DNA of 64,000 bases, from sequence record OR805294.1; one strand, written 5' to 3'. How positions within the stretch are numbered: position 1 is the stretch's first letter; each line of letters opens with the position of its first letter. A model generated the notes under the pieces. It saw only the letters and a program-made list of their open reading frames with translations. It made no database searches and was not told the DNA's origin. Position numbers and translations under genes: made by a program. Below, piece after piece: positions 1,628 through 51,492 of this stretch.

Positions 1628-3118
1628 ATGAAACTATTTGAAGTCTTTACTTTATATGAAGATAAAGCAGAACTGATTGTGAAAAATCAGGGACCCAAAC
1701 TCCTTACTGCTGCTAAAAATTATGGATCGAATATTCGTACGGCTGAAGAAATAATGAATGTTCTTAAGAGTGCAGATCCCACATCTGATCAGAAATACTT
1801 GCAGTGGATTACTAATAGATTTATTGCAGGTGAATTTAGATTAGAAGATACTAATAGAATAAGGGCAGATCTTATATCATTCGAGAGATATAAACGTGTT
1901 TTACCGAAAAAAGATATAAATCAGTATAAAACACTAGGAGAATTGTATGCAGTAATTGACCCATTAAATGACGCAGCAACAGGCAACGATCTGATCGGTG
2001 TATCTAATAAACAAGTTAAAAAGCATGCATATAATGCCAAACGCCAAGAATTAATTTCGTCTGGTCAGGCAGATGTAATTTATAAAGGCCAAGAAGGAAT
2101 GCTAGTTAATCCCAAAACAGAAGATGCAGCAATATTCTTTGGTCAAGGAACTAGGTGGTGTACCGCAGCAACTAGTAGTGATAATATGTTTAGTCACTAC
2201 CATAGTCAGGGACCGTTATATACTTGGTTAGGTTCTGATGGATTCAAAGCACAATTCCATTTAGAAACTAATCAATGGATGGATTCAAAAGACGAGCCTT
2301 TAGACAACGATCAAATGTCTAAGCTATTGTCAATTCCTATAATTAAAAAATTGTACGACGACGGTATAATTAAATCTGAGAAATCGCTTGTCGGAGATCG
2401 CGGCGGCTTCGATGACGAATATGATAATAGACTATCGGATGACTATTATTTCGACATGTGGGCTGATCGAAAATACCGTATCAAACGACATATTGAGAAA
2501 CACGGCATGTCTGAGTATTTAATAGATACACTTTCTGTTAAAGATCCTTTATTACCGTTGTTTGTTTTACCAGAATACTCAAAATACCCTGCGTCGAAAT
2601 CACTCGATGATTATTTTTTAAAATTATCCAAATTAGAACCGCTTGACCAATATAAAGAGATAAATGGGTATTTTGAAAGTGATATGTTACTTCGATTAAC
2701 TAGATACCTTGAAGATTCTACAGGGTCTCATTCTAAATCTTTAGATGATGCTGGATTTAATTTTGTTCGTCGATTACTGGACATAGGCGGAAAGGATTTT
2801 GATTTAATAATATCGAACTATCTAAAACATGTAGCTGAGAATTCTAAAACAAAACAATACCTTCTGTCTAATCTTCCGTTAGCTGTTGAGATTGCTAATT
2901 CGATTGAATGGCCGGAACTTATGACAGCAATTGAGCATGAGCTTAGCAATGCTAAAACACCAAAAGAAGAGAACGATGCAATAAAACTAGGCAGTGAGTT
3001 AATGTTTAAATCTAATAGCCTGCCTGTATCTAAATGGTTTATTAATTTACTTAAAACTACAGATGCAGGTAAACGATACTTATCATCATTACCTGAGTAT
3101 GACAACACAAAACAATAA
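1628..3118 (+). CDS. Hypothetical protein with GTRWCTA (PcfJ-like) motif, probable late/head protein
   Basis: Long ORF. The track start at 1550 overlaps terL; ATG 1628 follows CTAAATA at 1598. Confidence 0.6.
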   Translation: MKLFEVFTLYEDKAELIVKNQGPKLLTAAKNYGSNIRTAEEIMNVLKSADPTSDQKYLQWITNRFIAGEFRLEDTNRIRADLISFERYKRVLPKKDINQYKTLGELYAVIDPLNDAATGNDLIGVSNKQVKKHAYNAKRQELISSGQADVIYKGQEGMLVNPKTEDAAIFFGQGTRWCTAATSSDNMFSHYHSQGPLYTWLGSDGFKAQFHLETNQWMDSKDEPLDNDQMSKLLSIPIIKKLYDDGIIKSEKSLVGDRGGFDDEYDNRLSDDYYFDMWADRKYRIKRHIEKHGMSEYLIDTLSVKDPLLPLFVLPEYSKYPASKSLDDYFLKLSKLEPLDQYKEINGYFESDMLLRLTRYLEDSTGSHSKSLDDAGFNFVRRLLDIGGKDFDLIISNYLKHVAENSKTKQYLLSNLPLAVEIANSIEWPELMTAIEHELSNAKTPKEENDAIKLGSELMFKSNSLPVSKWFINLLKTTDAGKRYLSSLPEYDNTKQ

Positions 3119-3146
3119 ATACAACTAAAGTTTTGAGGTAAGAATT

Positions 3147-4637
3147 TTGATTAATTATAACAGAACTGCTAAAAAAATATTTTCTGTATTAAAAGGGCAC
3201 AGCTATCGGGTAAAAATGTATGACCTAACAGGCAATGAAGTGATAGACCCGGAAAAAGCTCGTCGATTTTATGTTCAATATCCGAACATGATGATAACAC
3301 TAGATGAAGACACTGGTGAAATTCGTATGAGCAAAAACAATAATATTTCTTTAACTGAATACGAAAGCACATTAGTTCAGTTAAAGAACATAGCAGTGCA
3401 TTACATGCTAAATTTTACCTTGAAAGACTTCGGGAGAGAAATAACACCGAGGGATTTTGCATACCAAGCAAAAGTTAAAAAGGAAAAAGAAATGTCTAAC
3501 GGATCTGTATCTGAATCTATATCTCCTCTAGCTGGTTCTAGAAAAACAAGTTATCAAACAATAGAAAATGTTAAAATACATGTAAAGCATAAGACACATG
3601 TCGACGAAGAGATTAGGGGAGCTCGTTCTAGAAATATTTCTGCAATTTTTATAGAACACTCGGGAGAAAGGTTTCGTTTTCCTCACAATAATTTAGTTGG
3701 TGCCCGCGCCATGGCAAGACATATACAGCAAGGCGGTAATCAATACGATTCGATCGGTTCTTATATAATAGAAAGCTGTGCTAACTATACTAAGTTAAGA
3801 GAATTTATGAGATATATTCGTTCTAATAATCTTATAACAGAAGATAGCAACGATGTTATTGTTAATATTAAGGAAAGTATAGATAGTATAGCTACAGATT
3901 TAAAACGTCTATCCGGTGTAAATACTTACGGTATAGTAAAATCTAGGATCGAAGAAACGGAAGAAACAGAATGCGATGTATCTGATGTAGATAAGTTTAA
4001 GGATATGTTTACTATTCGTAAGTTTGACGATAAGTTTACTGATGTTCTTCCTATAGTGAGTAAACTCGTTAAGGAAAAACAATCATATTTAAAGAAAATA
4101 GAAGAAGCAGTTTCTAAACAAATTTATATAGAGTCTATGCCTATTTTAGAAACTAATGCTATAATATATGAAAATCCTAATATTAAGTTAGGACATAGCT
4201 TACAAGAACTTAGTTCTAGAATATTAGAAAATACATTATTAGCTAATTATATTTCGTCGATGGGATCTAAGCTAATAAAAGAAAATACTTTAAATAAATT
4301 CGAATGTTCTATAATCAAATCATTTTTTGAAAACGTTAGTGTTAAAAAAGCAAATACTAATCAAACTAATGGGTTATTTGCAGAATCGATCAACGAATTT
4401 GGAATAAATATTCCTGACTTCCCGGATAATAACCCCTTTAATAAAAATAAAGACAACAAATACAGTAATTCAGATTTAGATAAACACGCATCTGATCAAA
4501 AAGTAGATGCAAATGACACTGTCTCTAAAATTGATTTTATTATAAGCAATAGCCACGGAAGATATAATGACAGAGAAAAATTACTAAAATTGCCAGATGA
4601 TGTTATTAACAGAATATATTCCAAAATTGCTAAATAA
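3147..4637 (+). CDS. Conserved hypothetical phage protein
   Basis: 496-aa ORF, TTG start with SD GAGGT, AATAAATA at 3114. Confidence 0.7.
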   Translation: MINYNRTAKKIFSVLKGHSYRVKMYDLTGNEVIDPEKARRFYVQYPNMMITLDEDTGEIRMSKNNNISLTEYESTLVQLKNIAVHYMLNFTLKDFGREITPRDFAYQAKVKKEKEMSNGSVSESISPLAGSRKTSYQTIENVKIHVKHKTHVDEEIRGARSRNISAIFIEHSGERFRFPHNNLVGARAMARHIQQGGNQYDSIGSYIIESCANYTKLREFMRYIRSNNLITEDSNDVIVNIKESIDSIATDLKRLSGVNTYGIVKSRIEETEETECDVSDVDKFKDMFTIRKFDDKFTDVLPIVSKLVKEKQSYLKKIEEAVSKQIYIESMPILETNAIIYENPNIKLGHSLQELSSRILENTLLANYISSMGSKLIKENTLNKFECSIIKSFFENVSVKKANTNQTNGLFAESINEFGINIPDFPDNNPFNKNKDNKYSNSDLDKHASDQKVDANDTVSKIDFIISNSHGRYNDREKLLKLPDDVINRIYSKIAK

Positions 4638-4717
4638 AATTATTATCAAGATCATTGAACTGGATTCGAAATAAAATTAATTCTGTATACTTTGCATATT
4701 ACACTAAAAATAAATGG

Positions 4718-4746
4718 TTGACAAATAGATAACTGCATTATATAAT
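4718..4746 (+). promoter_or_regulatory. Consensus sigma70 promoter of ssb
   Basis: TTGACA-17 bp-TATAAT. Confidence 0.9.
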
Positions 4747-4759
4747 TACACCATAACTT

Positions 4760-4803
4760 AGTTTTGCAGCTAACCCGAGCAAAACTGTATTAAAAGGGTT
4801 TAG
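4760..4803 (+). promoter_or_regulatory. Candidate H-type RNA pseudoknot in ssb leader
   Basis: Stem AGTTTTGC/GCAAAACT; loop AACCC (4772-4776) complementary to GGGTT (4796-4800). Confidence 0.5.
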
Positions 4804-4835
4804 GATAAAATAAAAAATATTAAGGATAATTCATT

Positions 4836-5822
4836 ATGGCTTCTCTTGCTGAACTACGTCAAAAATTAAAAGATCAAGAAACAAAACGTGGCACAAAATC
4901 ATCTGGCAGTGCAGATAAAAGTAATTTCCCATTCTGGGACATGAATGAAAACGACAGTGCTACTGTAAGATTTCTTCCTGATGCAAACACTGATAATACC
5001 TTTTTCTGGGTAGAAAAACAACAAATTAAAATTCCATTTAGTGGCATTGTAGGTATGAATAGTAAACCTACAGTTGTTACTGTACCGTGTGTAGAAATGT
5101 GGGGGGAATCTTGCCCTATTCATCAAGAAATCCGTCCATGGTTTAAAGATCCTTCGTTAGAGAAATTGGCGCGTACTTATTGGAAGAAACGTTCTTATAT
5201 TTTCCAAGGACTTGTACGTAAGTCACCTCTTGTAGAACAAGAACTACCAGAGAATCCTATTCGCAAATTTACATTCGGAAGTCAGATTTTTAATCTAGTT
5301 AAATCGTCTCTATTAGACCCCGAAATGGAAAACATTCCCACTGATTATTTAAATGGTACTGATTTCCAGATAACTAAATTAATGAAGGGCCAATATGCCG
5401 ATTACGCTACATCTAAATGGGCAAGGAAAGAATCTTCGTTAACTGAAGAAGAATTCCAGGCAATCCAAACATATGGTCTGTATGATTTAAGTAAATTTTT
5501 ACCTGCTAAACCTGATGCAGAAGCATTAGCTGCTATATTCGAGATGTTCGAAGAATCAGTAGAAGGTAAAGAATATGATCCGCAGCGTTGGGGGAAATAC
5601 TATCGCCCGTACGGGGTTGAAGTTCCTACTAATACTTCCGTGAGTGTACCTGTATCTAAGCCAGAACCTAAGACTACGGTATCTAGTTCTTCAGTTATAG
5701 AAGACGATAACGATGATCTTCCTTGGGAAGATACTACTAAACCTGTAGAGCCTGCCAAATCTGCTTCTAATGCGCAAGATATAATTGCGCTCATCCGCGC
5801 CCGCCAAAACAGCGGCAACTAA
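4836..5822 (+). CDS. Single-stranded DNA-binding protein (T4 gp32-like)
   Basis: Position before uvsX, VRFLP motif, C/H/C cluster PCVEMWGESCPIH, acidic low-complexity C-terminus. Confidence 0.85.
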   Translation: MASLAELRQKLKDQETKRGTKSSGSADKSNFPFWDMNENDSATVRFLPDANTDNTFFWVEKQQIKIPFSGIVGMNSKPTVVTVPCVEMWGESCPIHQEIRPWFKDPSLEKLARTYWKKRSYIFQGLVRKSPLVEQELPENPIRKFTFGSQIFNLVKSSLLDPEMENIPTDYLNGTDFQITKLMKGQYADYATSKWARKESSLTEEEFQAIQTYGLYDLSKFLPAKPDAEALAAIFEMFEESVEGKEYDPQRWGKYYRPYGVEVPTNTSVSVPVSKPEPKTTVSSSSVIEDDNDDLPWEDTTKPVEPAKSASNAQDIIALIRARQNSGN

Positions 5823-5826
5823 ATAG

Positions 5827-5855
5827 AGAGAGGGGATCGCTGATCCCCTCTCTTT
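5827..5855 (+). terminator. Intrinsic terminator after ssb
   Basis: 12-bp stem AGAGAGGGGATC/GATCCCCTCTCT, 3-nt loop, short T run. Confidence 0.7.
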
Positions 5856-5928
5856 AATATAACCTAAAATAGCCAAAAAGTACAACTACAATGTTGGAAG
5901 GACGGCAGTATTATAAAAAGGACATTTT

Positions 5929-6174
5929 ATGACAAAACCATTCGATATTTCTAAATTTAGAAAAGATATTACCAAAAGTATCACTGGCATTAGTACAGGA
6001 TTTAATGACCCAACTATTTGGATTAGTACCGGCAACTATACTCTTAATTATCTCATTAGTAGCGACTTTAATAAAGGCGTACCTATGGGTAAAGTAACTA
6101 TGTTTGCTGGCGAGTCGGGTTGTTTGCCTGAAACTGCTAAAGTGAAAATTAGACTATCTAAGAAGCAATCTTAA
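5929..6174 (+). CDS. uvsX: UvsX/RecA-like recombinase N-terminal fragment (64 aa) fused to a 17-aa N-intein
   Basis: WISTGNYTLNYLIS...GVPMGKVTMFAGESG is a RecA N-terminus ending inside Walker A, followed by CLPETAKVKIRLSKKQS-stop. Confidence 0.92.
   Translation: MTKPFDISKFRKDITKSITGISTGFNDPTIWISTGNYTLNYLISSDFNKGVPMGKVTMFAGESGCLPETAKVKIRLSKKQS
6121..6171 (+). mobile_element. Split intein N-fragment (IntN, 17 aa)
   Basis: Block A Cys1-Leu-Pro starting directly after GESG, stop after 17 codons. Confidence 0.88.
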
Positions 6175-6183
6175 CTGTCCAGT

Positions 6184-6223
6184 GTCTCCGTCGAGGATAA
6201 ATACTTTTATCTAAAACGGAGAC
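6184..6223 (+). promoter_or_regulatory. RBS-sequestering hairpin with embedded late promoter upstream of the endonuclease gene
   Basis: Outer stem GTCTCCGT/ACGGAGAC covers SD GGAGA; inner stem GATAAA/TTTATC; GATAAATA at 6196-6203. Confidence 0.7.
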
Positions 6224-6226
6224 TTT

Positions 6227-7660
6227 ATGGGAAATTACAATGTTCTTTCTACAAAAAACTTTAAGAAGCTATGTAATGAGTTAAACATAGTAACGATATC
6301 AGAAAAGTACATTTCTGATATACGTAAGATAGAAGATTCTGCTAAGAGCAAAGTGGATTCTGCATCTCAGCGTATGATATTAACTATGATAACTGTGAAA
6401 GTTCCCGACTTATATGATGCATATAACAGATACTATCAGCTCAGAACAGATGGTATTAGTACAAAAACTCAAGACAGTATTTCTTATATTTTTGGAAAAG
6501 ACTTCCTCGAATCTGTTAATTTACTAATCAGTAATAGATATAAAACTGCATTCCGTAAAGGAATGACAGTGGAAGAGACATTTATAACACGTAATAAAGA
6601 CTTTTCCAATAATGGTGTGTATTATAACCAGATGACTGATAAGCAAAAGAAACGTTTATCATTATTGCTTAGTGTGTATACACCAGAAAGGTTGGAGTTT
6701 TATAAAAAGACAATTTCGTTTTTTATTAAGTTAGATTTGACTAATTATGCAGGAAGAATGAAAAGACTGATGAAACTGGGATCTAGTACGTCTTTATATG
6801 CTAGCGTATTACGGTATGGTAAATCTGTCGGAAAAAGCACACATTCATCTGTATCTGCGGTAAAGAGAAACTATTTGCCTACTTCGATACAATATTGGAT
6901 GGCAAAGGGGTTTGATGAAGATACTGCATTAGTGAAGATAAACGAACATCAACAGAAAGCAAGTGCCATGTCTTCCAAAAAACTAAAAGGCACTAGCGAA
7001 TACTCTGTTCGATCAGTTGCATATTGGATTAAAAACGGGTATAGCGAAGAAGAGGCAAAAGGGAAAGTATCTAATATACAGAATACTTGGAAAAATGTAT
7101 CTCAAGAAGAGCGTGATCGAAGAATAGAATCGTGGATGACTACAATGAGTCTTAAAACAGACGAGGAGAAATCTTTGATAAACCTTAAAAAAACTCACAG
7201 CCCGGAAGGGATAATGGCAAGGACAAATTGCGATTATGATATTGCATTTAAGCAAAGCGTTGATTTTTTTAAGAAACGAAATAATTCTTCTAAAGTATCT
7301 CAAGAACTATTTTGGGGAATTGCCGAGGATATCGATACCGATGGAGTTTACTTTTCTGAACTAAACTACGAATACCCTGTTATGGGGAAAATAGTAGATT
7401 TCTATGATTCTAAAAGCAAAACAGTAATCGAATTTTATGGAAACTTTTGGCATGCAGATAGTACATATACTGATGACACACTGATATATGGAAAAACTGC
7501 TAAAGAAATAAGAGAATCGGACATTTACAGAGAAACGTTAATTAGATCATCTGATTTGGTTAGTGATTTTATAGTAGTTTGGGAAAAGGACTTTAGGAAG
7601 AATCCGAAAGAAACAATTAAAAATTTAGTTAATATTTTAAATAATAAAAGGAAATTTTAA
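6227..7660 (+). mobile_element. Free-standing putative homing endonuclease, Vsr-like PD-(D/E)xK, between the intein halves
   Basis: C-terminal VDFYD...VIEFYGNFWHAD...VVWEKDF; two YWxxxG(F/Y)xE(D/E)xA repeats. Confidence 0.8.
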
Positions 7661-7663
7661 TAA

Positions 7664-8047
7664 ATGGAATACATCGAAAAGGAAGTAACAGTTAGTGAAC
7701 TGAAGTCTCTCTACAGTAGTAATGAATACGAAATTGAGTTAGACACACCAGATGGCTGGCAAAAACTGGGATCTTGGTTCGATAAAGGCCCTCTTAGTAT
7801 GGTGACGGTAGAAACGCAGGATGGGTTAGTTACTAGATGTGCAGTAAACCATATGATCGAAGTGGTAGACGGATCGGAAACTTTTTGGACACTTGCAAAA
7901 GACTTGTACGAAGGCCAACAAGTGCTTACTGTAAACGGTGTCTCAACAATTAGTTCTGTAACTGAAAGTGGCATCGAAGAATGTTTCGATTTCGAAATAC
8001 TCCACGAAAATCATCGTTACTATGGTGATGGATTCTCTTCTCACAAT
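7664..8047 (+). mobile_element. Split intein C-fragment (IntC, 128 aa)
   Basis: TPDG, block B-like CAVNH, block F CFDFEI, terminal His-Asn followed by Ser+1. Confidence 0.9.
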
Positions 8048-8935
8048 AGTGGCAAATCGTATATAGTATCAGGAAACATTGTAAAAGATGCACAAGAAAA
8101 GGGAATTTTTGTTGTATTACTTGATTCAGAAAATGCACTCGACGAATCTTGGCTACATGCACTAGGTGTAGACACTGGACCGGAAAAAATGTTACGCATC
8201 TCTGTATCGATGATAGATGATGTAGCAAAAATTATTAGTGATTTTGTTAAAGATTACAAGACTAATTATGCCGAACTACCTAACAATGATCGACCAAAGG
8301 TGCTTTTTGTTATTGACTCGCTCGGAATGTTATTGACACCAACGGAAACTGCACAATTTCAAAATGGTGATATGAAAGGAGATATGGGCAGGAAAGCAAA
8401 ACAATTAAAAGCATTGATTTCTAACTGTACAAATATGTTCGGCAACTTAGACATAGGCCTTGTTTGTACTAACCATACATATGCATCTCAAGATTTATTT
8501 CAGCCCGACGCTGTAATTTCGGGTGGCAGCGGCGCAGTCTATGCCGCGTCAATTGTAGTGGCAATGCAAAAGTTAAAGTTAAAAGAAGACGAAGCAGGTA
8601 ATAAAATTTCTGAAGTAGCTGGTATTCGTGCAGTATGTAAAGTTGTGAAATCTCGATATGCAAAGCCGTTTGAGACAGTAAAAGTAAATATTCCATATGA
8701 TACAGGTATGAGTCCGATATCGGGTCTATTTGACTTGTTTGAAAAAACAGGTAAACTTGTAAAACAAGGCAATAGATACAAGTACATAACCAAAGATGGT
8801 ACCGAAATGCTGTATTATAGGAAAGAATGGAATGATTACGATAAACTAAAAGTAATTATGAATGAATTTACAGACGAAGACCTAGGCAATGTCGTAGAAG
8901 TGGAAGAGGGTCATTTAGAAGAGTTCGATGAATAA
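7664..8935 (+). CDS. uvsX: C-intein (128 aa) fused to UvsX/RecA C-terminal fragment (295 aa)
   Basis: After SHN the sequence resumes SGKS (rest of Walker A), then LDSENALD, Walker B VIDSLG, CTNHTY, SGG, KSRY. Confidence 0.93.
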   Translation: MEYIEKEVTVSELKSLYSSNEYEIELDTPDGWQKLGSWFDKGPLSMVTVETQDGLVTRCAVNHMIEVVDGSETFWTLAKDLYEGQQVLTVNGVSTISSVTESGIEECFDFEILHENHRYYGDGFSSHNSGKSYIVSGNIVKDAQEKGIFVVLLDSENALDESWLHALGVDTGPEKMLRISVSMIDDVAKIISDFVKDYKTNYAELPNNDRPKVLFVIDSLGMLLTPTETAQFQNGDMKGDMGRKAKQLKALISNCTNMFGNLDIGLVCTNHTYASQDLFQPDAVISGGSGAVYAASIVVAMQKLKLKEDEAGNKISEVAGIRAVCKVVKSRYAKPFETVKVNIPYDTGMSPISGLFDLFEKTGKLVKQGNRYKYITKDGTEMLYYRKEWNDYDKLKVIMNEFTDEDLGNVVEVEEGHLEEFDE

Positions 8936-10763
8936 ATTATGCGAAACAGATCGTATTAATATTATCAAATTACACTTCGATGATTTAAAATCTGTATCTG
9001 AATTAAAGAAAATATATGGAGTCTCTTATGATGTCATTAAAACCATCATAAGAGATGAAACGAATCGTCTGCCGTTGCAAGAAACTGATATAAAAATTTT
9101 GAAATTTAAAAAACTTGTTTCAAAGGAGTTGTTATTTGAATTACATGTAATTAAAAAACAATCATTTAATGAAATAAGAAAAACTTATAAGATTAATGAA
9201 CTTCATTTAAAACAAGTGTTTAATGATTACGGAATACCAATTGAAAAGTGTTTATATACTGCTACTAACAAGAAGCGTAAAACAAAAAAGCCTGAAGATT
9301 TTACTAAAGACTTTTTCGAACACTTAGTATATAACGAAAGACGAACAATTAGTTGGATAAAAAATAATTATAACTTTAATTTTGAAGAACTAAAACATCA
9401 TTTAACACATTTAAAAATCGATTATACTAATTCGTTGCCACCTGCTGTAAAACATCAACAAGATAAAATATCTAGAGAAACTCTAGCAGAAGAATTAAAA
9501 ATTAAATCTATTGTTGATATAATAAATGAATACGGAATTTCTAGAACTTATGTAGAAAGCGTTATAAAAGAATACAATATACAGTATTTTACAAAACCGA
9601 AACATTCTATATTAAGTGGTAAAGAATCAGAAATTTATCGGATGTATTATGATGAATGTATGACTACATACCAAATAGCAGAAAAATTGGGAGTATGTCA
9701 ATACACCATATGGAAAATAATGGCAGATAACGGATGGAAAACACGAGAACCGATTAAAAAAATTGATTTGATTTGGAATGATATAAAAGAAGAAGTTGTT
9801 AAATTAATAGACAACGGTTATACATTATCTGCTTTATGTGAAAAATACGAAATAACATCTATTACTGAAAAGTTAATAGAAGAAGGTATAAAATATACAA
9901 AGGGAAATATTTCTTCTGGTCATGCAGAAATATCTGAATATGTGCGTTCATTGGGATTTAATGTAATCGACAATGATCGTACTATTATATTTCCGCGAGA
10001 AATTGATATTTTTATTCCCGAACTTAACATAGGAATAGAATACAACGGATTATATTTTCATAGCACACGAACAGAAGGAAATGTAACAAAGCATAGAGAA
10101 AAATATAGCATATGTAAACAAAAAGGTATTCGTTTAATACAAATTTTTGAAGATGAATTTATTCATAAGAAAGAACTAGTAAAGAGAAAATTAGCGCACA
10201 TTTTAGGAAAATCTAATAATAAATGTTATGCAAGGAATTGTATAGTTAAAGAAATATCGGTAGCAGACAAACGAAATTTCTTTAAAAAATATCACATACA
10301 AGAAGATTCTGCATCCTCGTATGCATATGGATTATATTATGATAATGAATTAGTTTGTGCTATGTCTTTTCTTAAAAAGAAGAAATGTACAGAACTAGTT
10401 AGATATGCATCTTCTATGCACGTGATCGGCGGATTTTCTAAGTTGTTGAAATATTGTATTAATAATAACAAAATAGATGTTATAAACACATATGCTGATC
10501 TCAGATGGTCGAATCCGACAAATAATGTATATGTAAACAATGGGTTTGATATACTGTATGAGACTGATTTTAATTACACTTATGTGAGTAAAGAGGATTT
10601 TTCAAAAAGGCTTAATAGGCAAAAATTTATGAAACACAAGTTGAAAAACATTTTATCAGATTTCGACAAATCATTAACAGAAGAAGAGAATATGAAAAAT
10701 AATGGATTTTATCGAGTATACGATGCTGGCCATTTAAAATTGCAATATAAGGTTAATAAATGA
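8928..10763 (+). mobile_element. Hef-like free-standing putative homing endonuclease with N-terminal helical repeats
   Basis: EIDIFIPELNIGIEYNGLYFHS...IRLIQIFEDE nuclease motif followed by YARNC...ELVRYAS...YADLRWS...YDAG domain. Confidence 0.75.
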
Positions 10764-19560: not shown

Positions 19561-19600
19561 TAGTAATAGTAGATAAATATAACGAATAGGGGATACTGAT

Positions 19601-51458: not shown

Positions 51459-51492
51459 AACAATATTTATCATACTAAACTTTAATTATAAC

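Follow-up and report, generated by a model that had tools for sequence, protein, structure and literature searches.

A hairpin enclosing a late-promoter box is a likely temporal switch for a Vsr-like homing endonuclease in the split uvsX gene of Pseudomonas phage Ettore

The DNA analyzed here, a stretch of 64,000 nucleotides (nt) hereafter called the window, corresponds to bases 1-64000 of the genome of Pseudomonas phage Ettore (OR805294.1). The element under study is a 52-nt spacer that separates the first coding piece of a split uvsX gene (the N-piece) from a gene for a 477-amino-acid endonuclease, which is followed in turn by the second uvsX piece (the C-piece). We consider it likely that this spacer is a temporal translation switch for the endonuclease, a Vsr-like homing enzyme lodged within the split intein of uvsX. 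On transcripts that start upstream, from a sigma-70 promoter before the gp32-like gene and by read-through of the N-piece, the 5' arm of a hairpin would pair with the region of the Shine-Dalgarno (SD) sequence, and an outer helix would also hide part of the AUG; ribosomes would be blocked, and the nuclease would not be made. Late in infection, host RNA polymerase carrying a gp55-like sigma factor would recognize the box GATAAATA inside the hairpin and start at about position 6209. The resulting RNA would lack the 5' strands of both helices, would be unstructured, and could be translated; production of the nuclease is thus probably confined to late infection. From the evidence below we infer where transcription starts, that early transcripts read through, that translation is blocked on them, and hence the timing.

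The spacer folds into a hairpin of -22.8 kcal/mol (RNAfold), compared with a mean of -10.9 for dinucleotide shuffles (z -4.24), and none of 200 shuffles folded as stably. It ranked fifth in stability among 465 start regions genome-wide (-55 to +18), in a list whose top 25 include terminator-like hairpins with T runs, tRNA genes, and doubtful open reading frames (ORFs). The initial annotation, made from the letters alone, had proposed this hairpin, and every coordinate it gave for the arms matches the fold (Table 1). It had also placed the SD sequence in the hairpin, and the GGAG indeed lies within the 3' arm. The inner stem that it described as GATAAA/TTTATC is present, although it comprises seven pairs (GGATAAA/TTTATCT) rather than six. 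Because the predicted +1 is position 6209, a late RNA would lack the 5' arm. Such an RNA is predicted to be unstructured (0.0 kcal/mol); averaged over the SD region, the probability of being unpaired is 0.79, compared with 0.31 in the full-length RNA. The suggestion that a transcript from about 6209 frees the ribosome-binding site is thus borne out in silico.

The distribution of the box was analyzed in the whole Ettore genome (287.7 kb), assembled from the annotated record. GATAAATA occurs 32 times, and 25 of these copies are intergenic in a genome with 9% intergenic DNA (binomial P = 2e-20). Most copies (27/32) lie at most 60 nt upstream of a start codon on the same strand, with a median distance of 24 nt. 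Other boxes showed no such placement: 3 of 39 copies of the T4 consensus TATAAATA, 7 of 48 of AATAAATA, and 3 of 27 of CATAAATA were upstream, and the forms with T, A, or C before ATAAATA together gave 13 of 114 (Fisher P = 7e-15 against GATAAATA). Of the 27 upstream copies, 11 stand before genes whose annotation reads virion structural protein, baseplate wedge or hub, tail sheath, or tail tube, and several others open structural modules. At the predicted +1, 13 bases past the first G of the box, 21 of the 32 copies have an A (P = 2e-4), and no conserved -35 region was found upstream of the copies. The T4 late box spans -13 to -6 and thereby fixes the transcript start (PMC2988020). The Ettore motif likewise is an A+T-rich box of 8 bp that stands before structural genes without a -35 element, with G at -13. 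The phage also encodes a gp55-like late sigma factor, ETTORE_0452, which matched phrog_12791 (E = 8e-82) and the late sigma family phrog_234 (E = 1e-17) and had no match in Pfam and NCBIfam searches. Positional bias, the A at +1, and a sigma factor of the gp55 family together support the box in the hairpin as a perfect copy of the phage's own late-type promoter. The initial annotation had rightly located this box inside the hairpin but had taken it for an approximate T4 box, whereas it is the phage's own consensus. A reading of GATAAATA as a weak T4 look-alike was considered and rejected, because it is the G form that constitutes the real motif and TATAAATA is not enriched upstream. Within the window itself, GATAAATA is at chance frequency (8 copies, 10.8 expected), and TATAAATA is under-represented (12 copies, 21 expected).

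Homologs of the endonuclease with 33-42% identity were found in metagenome contigs, and 11 related uvsX cassettes were compared (L004, L006, L007, L008, L009, L012, L013, L022, L023, L025, and L026). All 11 keep the order N-piece, spacer, endonuclease, C-piece, with an N-piece of about 80 amino acids, a spacer of 34-78 nt, and a RecA-type C-piece of about 425 amino acids; L023 lies on a short contig in which only the end of the N-piece and the endonuclease are visible. Seven of ten spacers tested had z scores of -3.4 or lower. The 3' arm contains the SD sequence in the Ettore window and in L004, L008, L009, L022, and L023, and it covers the start codon and first codons in L006, L025, and L026. 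The spacer is 100% identical across ten distinct PA5oct-like genomes, which therefore provide no covariation information. Among the cassettes, RNAalifold on six spacers predicted a 14-bp helix in which 9 of the 14 pairs show compensatory double changes, so the covariation anticipated by the initial annotation is present. Helix cells were paired in 86.9% of cases, compared with 42-55% when the partner was slid by 1-3 columns, and none of 500 shuffles reached the observed value. Of 12 spacers, Ettore included, 9 carry a TAAATA box, where 1.1 would be expected (0 of 2,000 shuffles). Its form is TATAAATA in four cassettes, the Aeh1-type GCTAAATA in three, AATAAATA in one, and GATAAATA in Ettore. 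All eight spacers that leave a leader after a start 6 bases past the box would yield a late RNA without the 5' arm.

These comparisons bear on whether the hairpin could be a constitutive translation block that has no internal promoter, the nuclease being made by leakage or by coupling to the N-piece and GATAAATA being a chance occurrence or serving only the inner stem. The bases of the box do form that stem, and one relative (L020) uses overlapping ORFs with no spacer. Such a block is nevertheless unlikely: the genomic copies of the box are positioned like promoters, the TAAATA box recurs at the same place in the related spacers, and it persists there while the inner sequences differ.

Transcription across the locus was assessed in four RNA sequencing (RNA-seq) runs from one 2020 study, as assembled contigs carrying no strand, end, or time information. 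One contig (6118-6765) runs unbroken across the spacer hairpin, and continuous RNA or complementary DNA therefore exists across it. In the most fragmented run (X4), a contig (5737-5982) spans the hairpin past gp32. Early or middle transcripts that read through probably start at the sigma-70 promoter upstream of the gp32-like gene, judged by its match to the consensus. The unbroken contig speaks against the spacer hairpin being mainly a terminator or attenuator between the N-piece and the endonuclease gene, which would keep nuclease mRNA low at all times. A G+C-rich stem right past the stop codon would suit a terminator. So would the X4 word depth, which is about 8,500 in the N-piece and drops to about 2,500 over the initial part of the endonuclease gene, although such depth in contigs reflects expression poorly. 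Yet just three U residues follow the stem, and a terminator scan made no call there. In the relatives, moreover, the 3' arm tracks the SD sequence or the start codon and the arms covary, which a terminator would not need. We regard termination as quite unlikely to be the main role of the hairpin. As a separate observation, X4 word depth, a weak measure of expression, was 10,000-50,000 in the uvsX C-piece (7655-8640) and 2,500-6,000 in the endonuclease gene (6276-7654); an internal promoter near the 3' end of the endonuclease gene or differing RNA stability could account for it.

The inverted repeat could alternatively act as DNA, as a homing-site-like operator through which the endonuclease represses its own gene as I-TevI does in T4 (PMC2988022). 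Positions 6208-6225 match the end of the N-piece (6155-6172) at 13 of 18 bases, but 19 of 300 shuffles reached this value, so the match is not significant, and covariation of an RNA type, with G-U pairs, fits an RNA helix better. An operator in place of a translational switch is very unlikely, though it could form an additional layer. A role of the stem-loop in RNA processing or stability in place of a translation switch, for example as a target of RNase III or of a RegB-like enzyme at GGAG (GGAG is the RegB target in T4), is most unlikely: the depth profile does differ between the uvsX pieces and the endonuclease gene, but the helices of 8 and 7 bp are interrupted and short for RNase III, and the conserved promoter box would be left unexplained.

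Several observations weigh against a temporal translation switch. We infer the timing because the RNA-seq contigs lack strand, 5' ends, and time. The stop codon of the N-piece lies only 9 nt before the 5' arm, and terminating ribosomes could briefly open the hairpin and allow some leakage. No comparable hairpin was found at the other homing endonuclease genes of the phage, so the hairpin belongs to this cassette and is no general trait of the genome. The published promoter analysis of PA5oct reported only sigma-70-like motifs and does not mention the box (PMC7318152). Among close relatives, no recognizable box was found in the spacers of L013, L022, and L025. Finally, L020 (500-610) has no spacer, and its N-piece stop codon overlaps the endonuclease start (ATGA); from its sequence this appears to be an alternative arrangement of the coupling type, and the switch is therefore not obligatory.

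The identity of the endonuclease was established by structure prediction and fold comparison, because sequence searches of Pfam, PHROGs, NCBIfam, and PDB returned no match. Its homologs are named very-short-patch-repair endonucleases by two sources. In the AlphaFold model, the N-terminal part is helical and a Vsr-like nuclease domain occupies residues 354-475, with a predicted local distance difference test score of 85-97 for residues 350-477. VIA-align to E. coli Vsr gave Z scores of 11.2 (1CW0) and 10.3 (1VSR), with a root mean square deviation of 2.6 Å over 107 residues, and the Foldseek probability for a Vsr-like fold was 0.93. Residues E382, D391, E402, H409, and D432 are invariant, and the modeled Vsr fold carries conserved acidic and histidine residues of the EDxHD type. 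On this model, the ORF encodes a predicted Vsr-like, free-standing homing endonuclease.

The two pieces of uvsX flank this gene. The N-piece matches the UvsX profile phrog_97 over its first 65-70 positions; its N-extein (5929-6120) ends in GESG and is followed by an intein-N of 17 amino acids (6121-6171) that begins with Cys. The C-piece opens with an intein-C of 128 amino acids (7664-8047) that ends in SSHN, and the C-extein, from position 8048, begins with SGKS and comprises the RecA/UvsX core (PF00154; phrog_97 positions 83-445). The intein-C matched VidaL (PDB 6VGV) with E = 8.5e-36 over residues 5-128. In PA5oct virions, the product of the C-piece has been found by MS/MS. The break falls within the Walker A motif, and since its halves lie on separate pieces, UvsX would need protein trans-splicing, which alone rebuilds GESGSGKS. 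Homology of the intein-C, a very short intein-N starting with Cys, and a terminal His-Asn followed by Ser at +1 are all of the VidaL type. The order GESG, a 17-residue segment from Cys to the stop codon, the endonuclease, and an intein-C that ends in SSHN before SGKS is that of a fractured gene. As read from its ORFs, the uvsX locus is predicted to be a fractured gene as Dassa et al. 2009 (PMC2677866) use the term, and it has an atypically split intein of the VidaL type. For the fractured genes in that paper, 15 of 16 endonuclease 5' untranslated regions (UTRs) were reported to contain hairpins, and TATAAATA was present in ten of these. Those loci share with Ettore the arrangement of N-extein plus intein-N, free-standing Vsr-like endonuclease, and intein-C plus C-extein. 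They differ in that their eight host genes do not include uvsX and they are metagenomic fragments, whereas Ettore is a cultivated phage with RNA-seq data; the Ettore intein, in contrast to theirs, is split atypically, near the N terminus. VidaL itself (PDB 6VGV/6VGW) has an intein-N of 16 amino acids (PMC13014065), compared with 17 in Ettore. It derives from a metagenome and serves as a protein-engineering tool, and the work on it was not concerned with how its gene is controlled in nature; for Ettore, splicing is predicted.

The combination of a hairpin over the ribosome-binding site and an internal late promoter is established for T4 I-TevI and has been proposed for I-TevII, I-TevIII, segB, and mobE of Aeromonas phage Aeh1 (PMC2988022; Gott 1988; Gibb & Edgell 2007, 2009). 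The initial annotation invoked this control logic, and the hairpin, the box, the late sigma factor, and the covariation all agree with it in silico. As in the I-TevI/segB/mobE systems, the SD sequence is predicted to be buried on any read-through RNA from an early or middle promoter, a predicted gp55-type promoter is placed between the arms, late RNA begun at the predicted start would be without the 5' arm, the phage encodes a gp55-type sigma factor, and the homing endonuclease is embedded in an essential gene of DNA metabolism. Ettore differs in that the host gene is uvsX, interrupted by way of a split intein and not by an intron or direct split, in that the nuclease is Vsr-like and not GIY-YIG or HNH, in the box GATAAATA, and in the 288-kb Pseudomonas jumbo phage that carries it. 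The T4 late genes e, soc, 49, 25, and 26 are also occluded at the ribosome-binding site on early RNA and translated only late, although they are not mobile (PMC2988022). The initial annotation further suggested a domesticated element. This is unsupported, because such self-restraint is usual for selfish homing endonucleases and has been described for this class of locus (PMC2677866).

The mechanism is therefore already published, and no new one is revealed here. New are uvsX as the host gene, the cultivated Pseudomonas jumbo phage, the intein of the VidaL type, and the G variant of the box with its genome-wide distribution. In the jumbo phages CBB and GAP32, which are RaK2-like, an ATAAATA late motif was predicted before structural genes together with a gp55-like sigma factor (PMC5259590), and Aeh1 uses the late-promoter variant (a/g)CTAAATA (PMC2988020). 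Like these, the PA5oct-like motif is a short -10-type box that lies before structural genes without a -35 element, and positions -13 and -12 are variable; unlike them, it has G at the first position, and TATAAATA is not enriched upstream (3/39). A G(-13) late-promoter variant, unreported in the PA5oct promoter analysis (PMC7318152), is thereby defined, and GATAAATA, with about 27 sites, is a candidate late-promoter consensus for PA5oct-like phages. In a full-text search of the literature, the motif string was met only in primer sequences.

A wider set of 75 more distant endonuclease genes was examined for the same features; because some loci are near-duplicates, its counts are somewhat inflated. 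A strong hairpin over the translation start was found at 21% of these genes, compared with 3% of neighboring genes (P = 1.6e-5), and hairpin z scores also differed between the two groups (Mann-Whitney P = 2e-10). TAAATA was present in 33 of 70 distinct upstream regions and in 10 of 149 controls (P = 1e-11). In at least 31 of the distant loci (within L027-L103), the endonuclease is followed by an ORF that resembles intein-C and has no match to the UvsX core. Judged by these ORFs, the loci are probably fractured genes other than uvsX. Because the ORFs match only the intein-C part, the endonuclease and this type of intein appear to travel together beyond uvsX. A scan of IMG/VR returned only two distant relatives.

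The differing box forms raise the possibility that the box is re-tuned to the late-sigma "dialect" of the resident phage (GATAAATA, equal to their genome-wide motif, in PA5oct-like phages, the Aeh1-type GCTAAATA in three cassettes, and the T4-type TATAAATA in four), with the stem covarying around the SD sequence. We propose this tentatively, as an idea somewhat more likely to be wrong than right. If it is true, a module of hairpin and promoter either is carried along with the endonuclease and adapts whenever a new phage is invaded, or is formed anew on each occasion, and endonuclease cassettes could report the late-promoter specificity of uncultured phages. Ettore offers a cultivable example of a device known mainly from T4-like phages and metagenomic fragments, in a P. 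aeruginosa jumbo phage that is a close relative of phages studied for therapy. It also appears to show an ultra-short split intein of the VidaL type in a natural setting and under regulation. Three gene annotations are corrected: those of the uvsX N-piece, the endonuclease, and the C-piece with its intein, all labeled hypothetical or incomplete until now.

The 3.2-kb locus matches Ettore (OR805294.1) at 100% identity; for PA5oct, MIJ3, Paride, and seven further records, the identity is 99.5% or higher. The PA5oct-like phages belong to the genus Wroclawvirus and are jumbo myoviruses of 285-288 kb that rely on host RNA polymerase (PMC7318152). In the GenBank records, the uvsX N-piece and the 477-amino-acid endonuclease are both labeled hypothetical, and the text of the PA5oct paper is silent on gp274-276 (PMC7318152). 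Coordinates of the locus are collected in Table 1.

Table 1. Features of the split uvsX locus of phage Ettore, in window positions
Feature	Position	Strand	Remarks
Sigma-70 consensus promoter, TTGACA-17-TATAAT	4718..4746	+	12/12 matches; upstream of gp32-like gene
gp32-like single-strand DNA-binding protein gene	4836..5822	+	Pfam PF08804, E = 1.7e-9; annotation
12-bp G+C-rich palindromic hairpin	5827..5853	+	Directly past gp32 stop codon; may be a partial terminator or stabilizer
uvsX N-piece, 81-amino-acid ORF	5929..6174	+	phrog_97 UvsX; stop codon 6172-6174
Spacer, 52 nt, endonuclease 5' UTR	6175..6226	+	
Outer 4-bp helix	6178..6181 with 6228-6231	+	Covers U and G of AUG
5' arm (anti-SD), GTCTCCGT	6184..6191	+	Fold; covariation in relatives
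Inner stem-loop, 7 bp, 4-nt loop	6195..6212	+	GGATAAA 6195-6201 with TTTATCT 6206-6212
Late-promoter-type box, GATAAATA	6196..6203	+	Positions -13 to -6; between the arms
Predicted late transcription start, A	6209	+	6 nt past box; by T4 rule (PMC2988020)
3' arm, ACGGAGAC	6216..6223	+	Holds SD GGAG 6218-6221, 5 nt before ATG
Homing endonuclease gene, free-standing, 477 amino acids	6227..7660	+	ATG at 6227
uvsX C-piece, 423-amino-acid ORF	7664..8935	+	PF00154; phrog_97; VidaL PDB 6VGV
Second homing endonuclease gene, Hef-like	8928..10763	+	8-nt overlap with uvsX end

The Hef-like gene downstream of uvsX encodes helix-turn-helix domains and has a weak match to MTES_1575. The 8-nt overlap and the lack of a hairpin and of a box of its own suggest that it is translationally coupled to uvsX. 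The two endonucleases that flank the uvsX C-piece proved to be unrelated. Outside the window, at 87802-93028 of the Ettore genome, a homing endonuclease gene, overlapping the N-part, also splits DNA polymerase B, and no hairpin was found upstream of this endonuclease. This split has already been described for MIJ3, and DNA polymerase is the only split gene described in that paper (PMC6892783).

Other copies of GATAAATA in the window lie at 19572, 25485, 25930, 27513, 43174, and 62808 on the plus strand and at 51471 on the minus strand. Elsewhere in the genome, two copies at 237621 (+) and 237648 (-) face each other as a palindrome, flanked by a baseplate-hub gene and the first gene of the portal module, and they look like a pair of divergent late promoters. 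In locus L082 (1-600), the uvsX homolog is uninterrupted at Walker A; an intein-like Cys-Leu-Cys-Pro start follows downstream of that site, an endonuclease relative is located some 1 kb away, and a different insertion site may be in use there.

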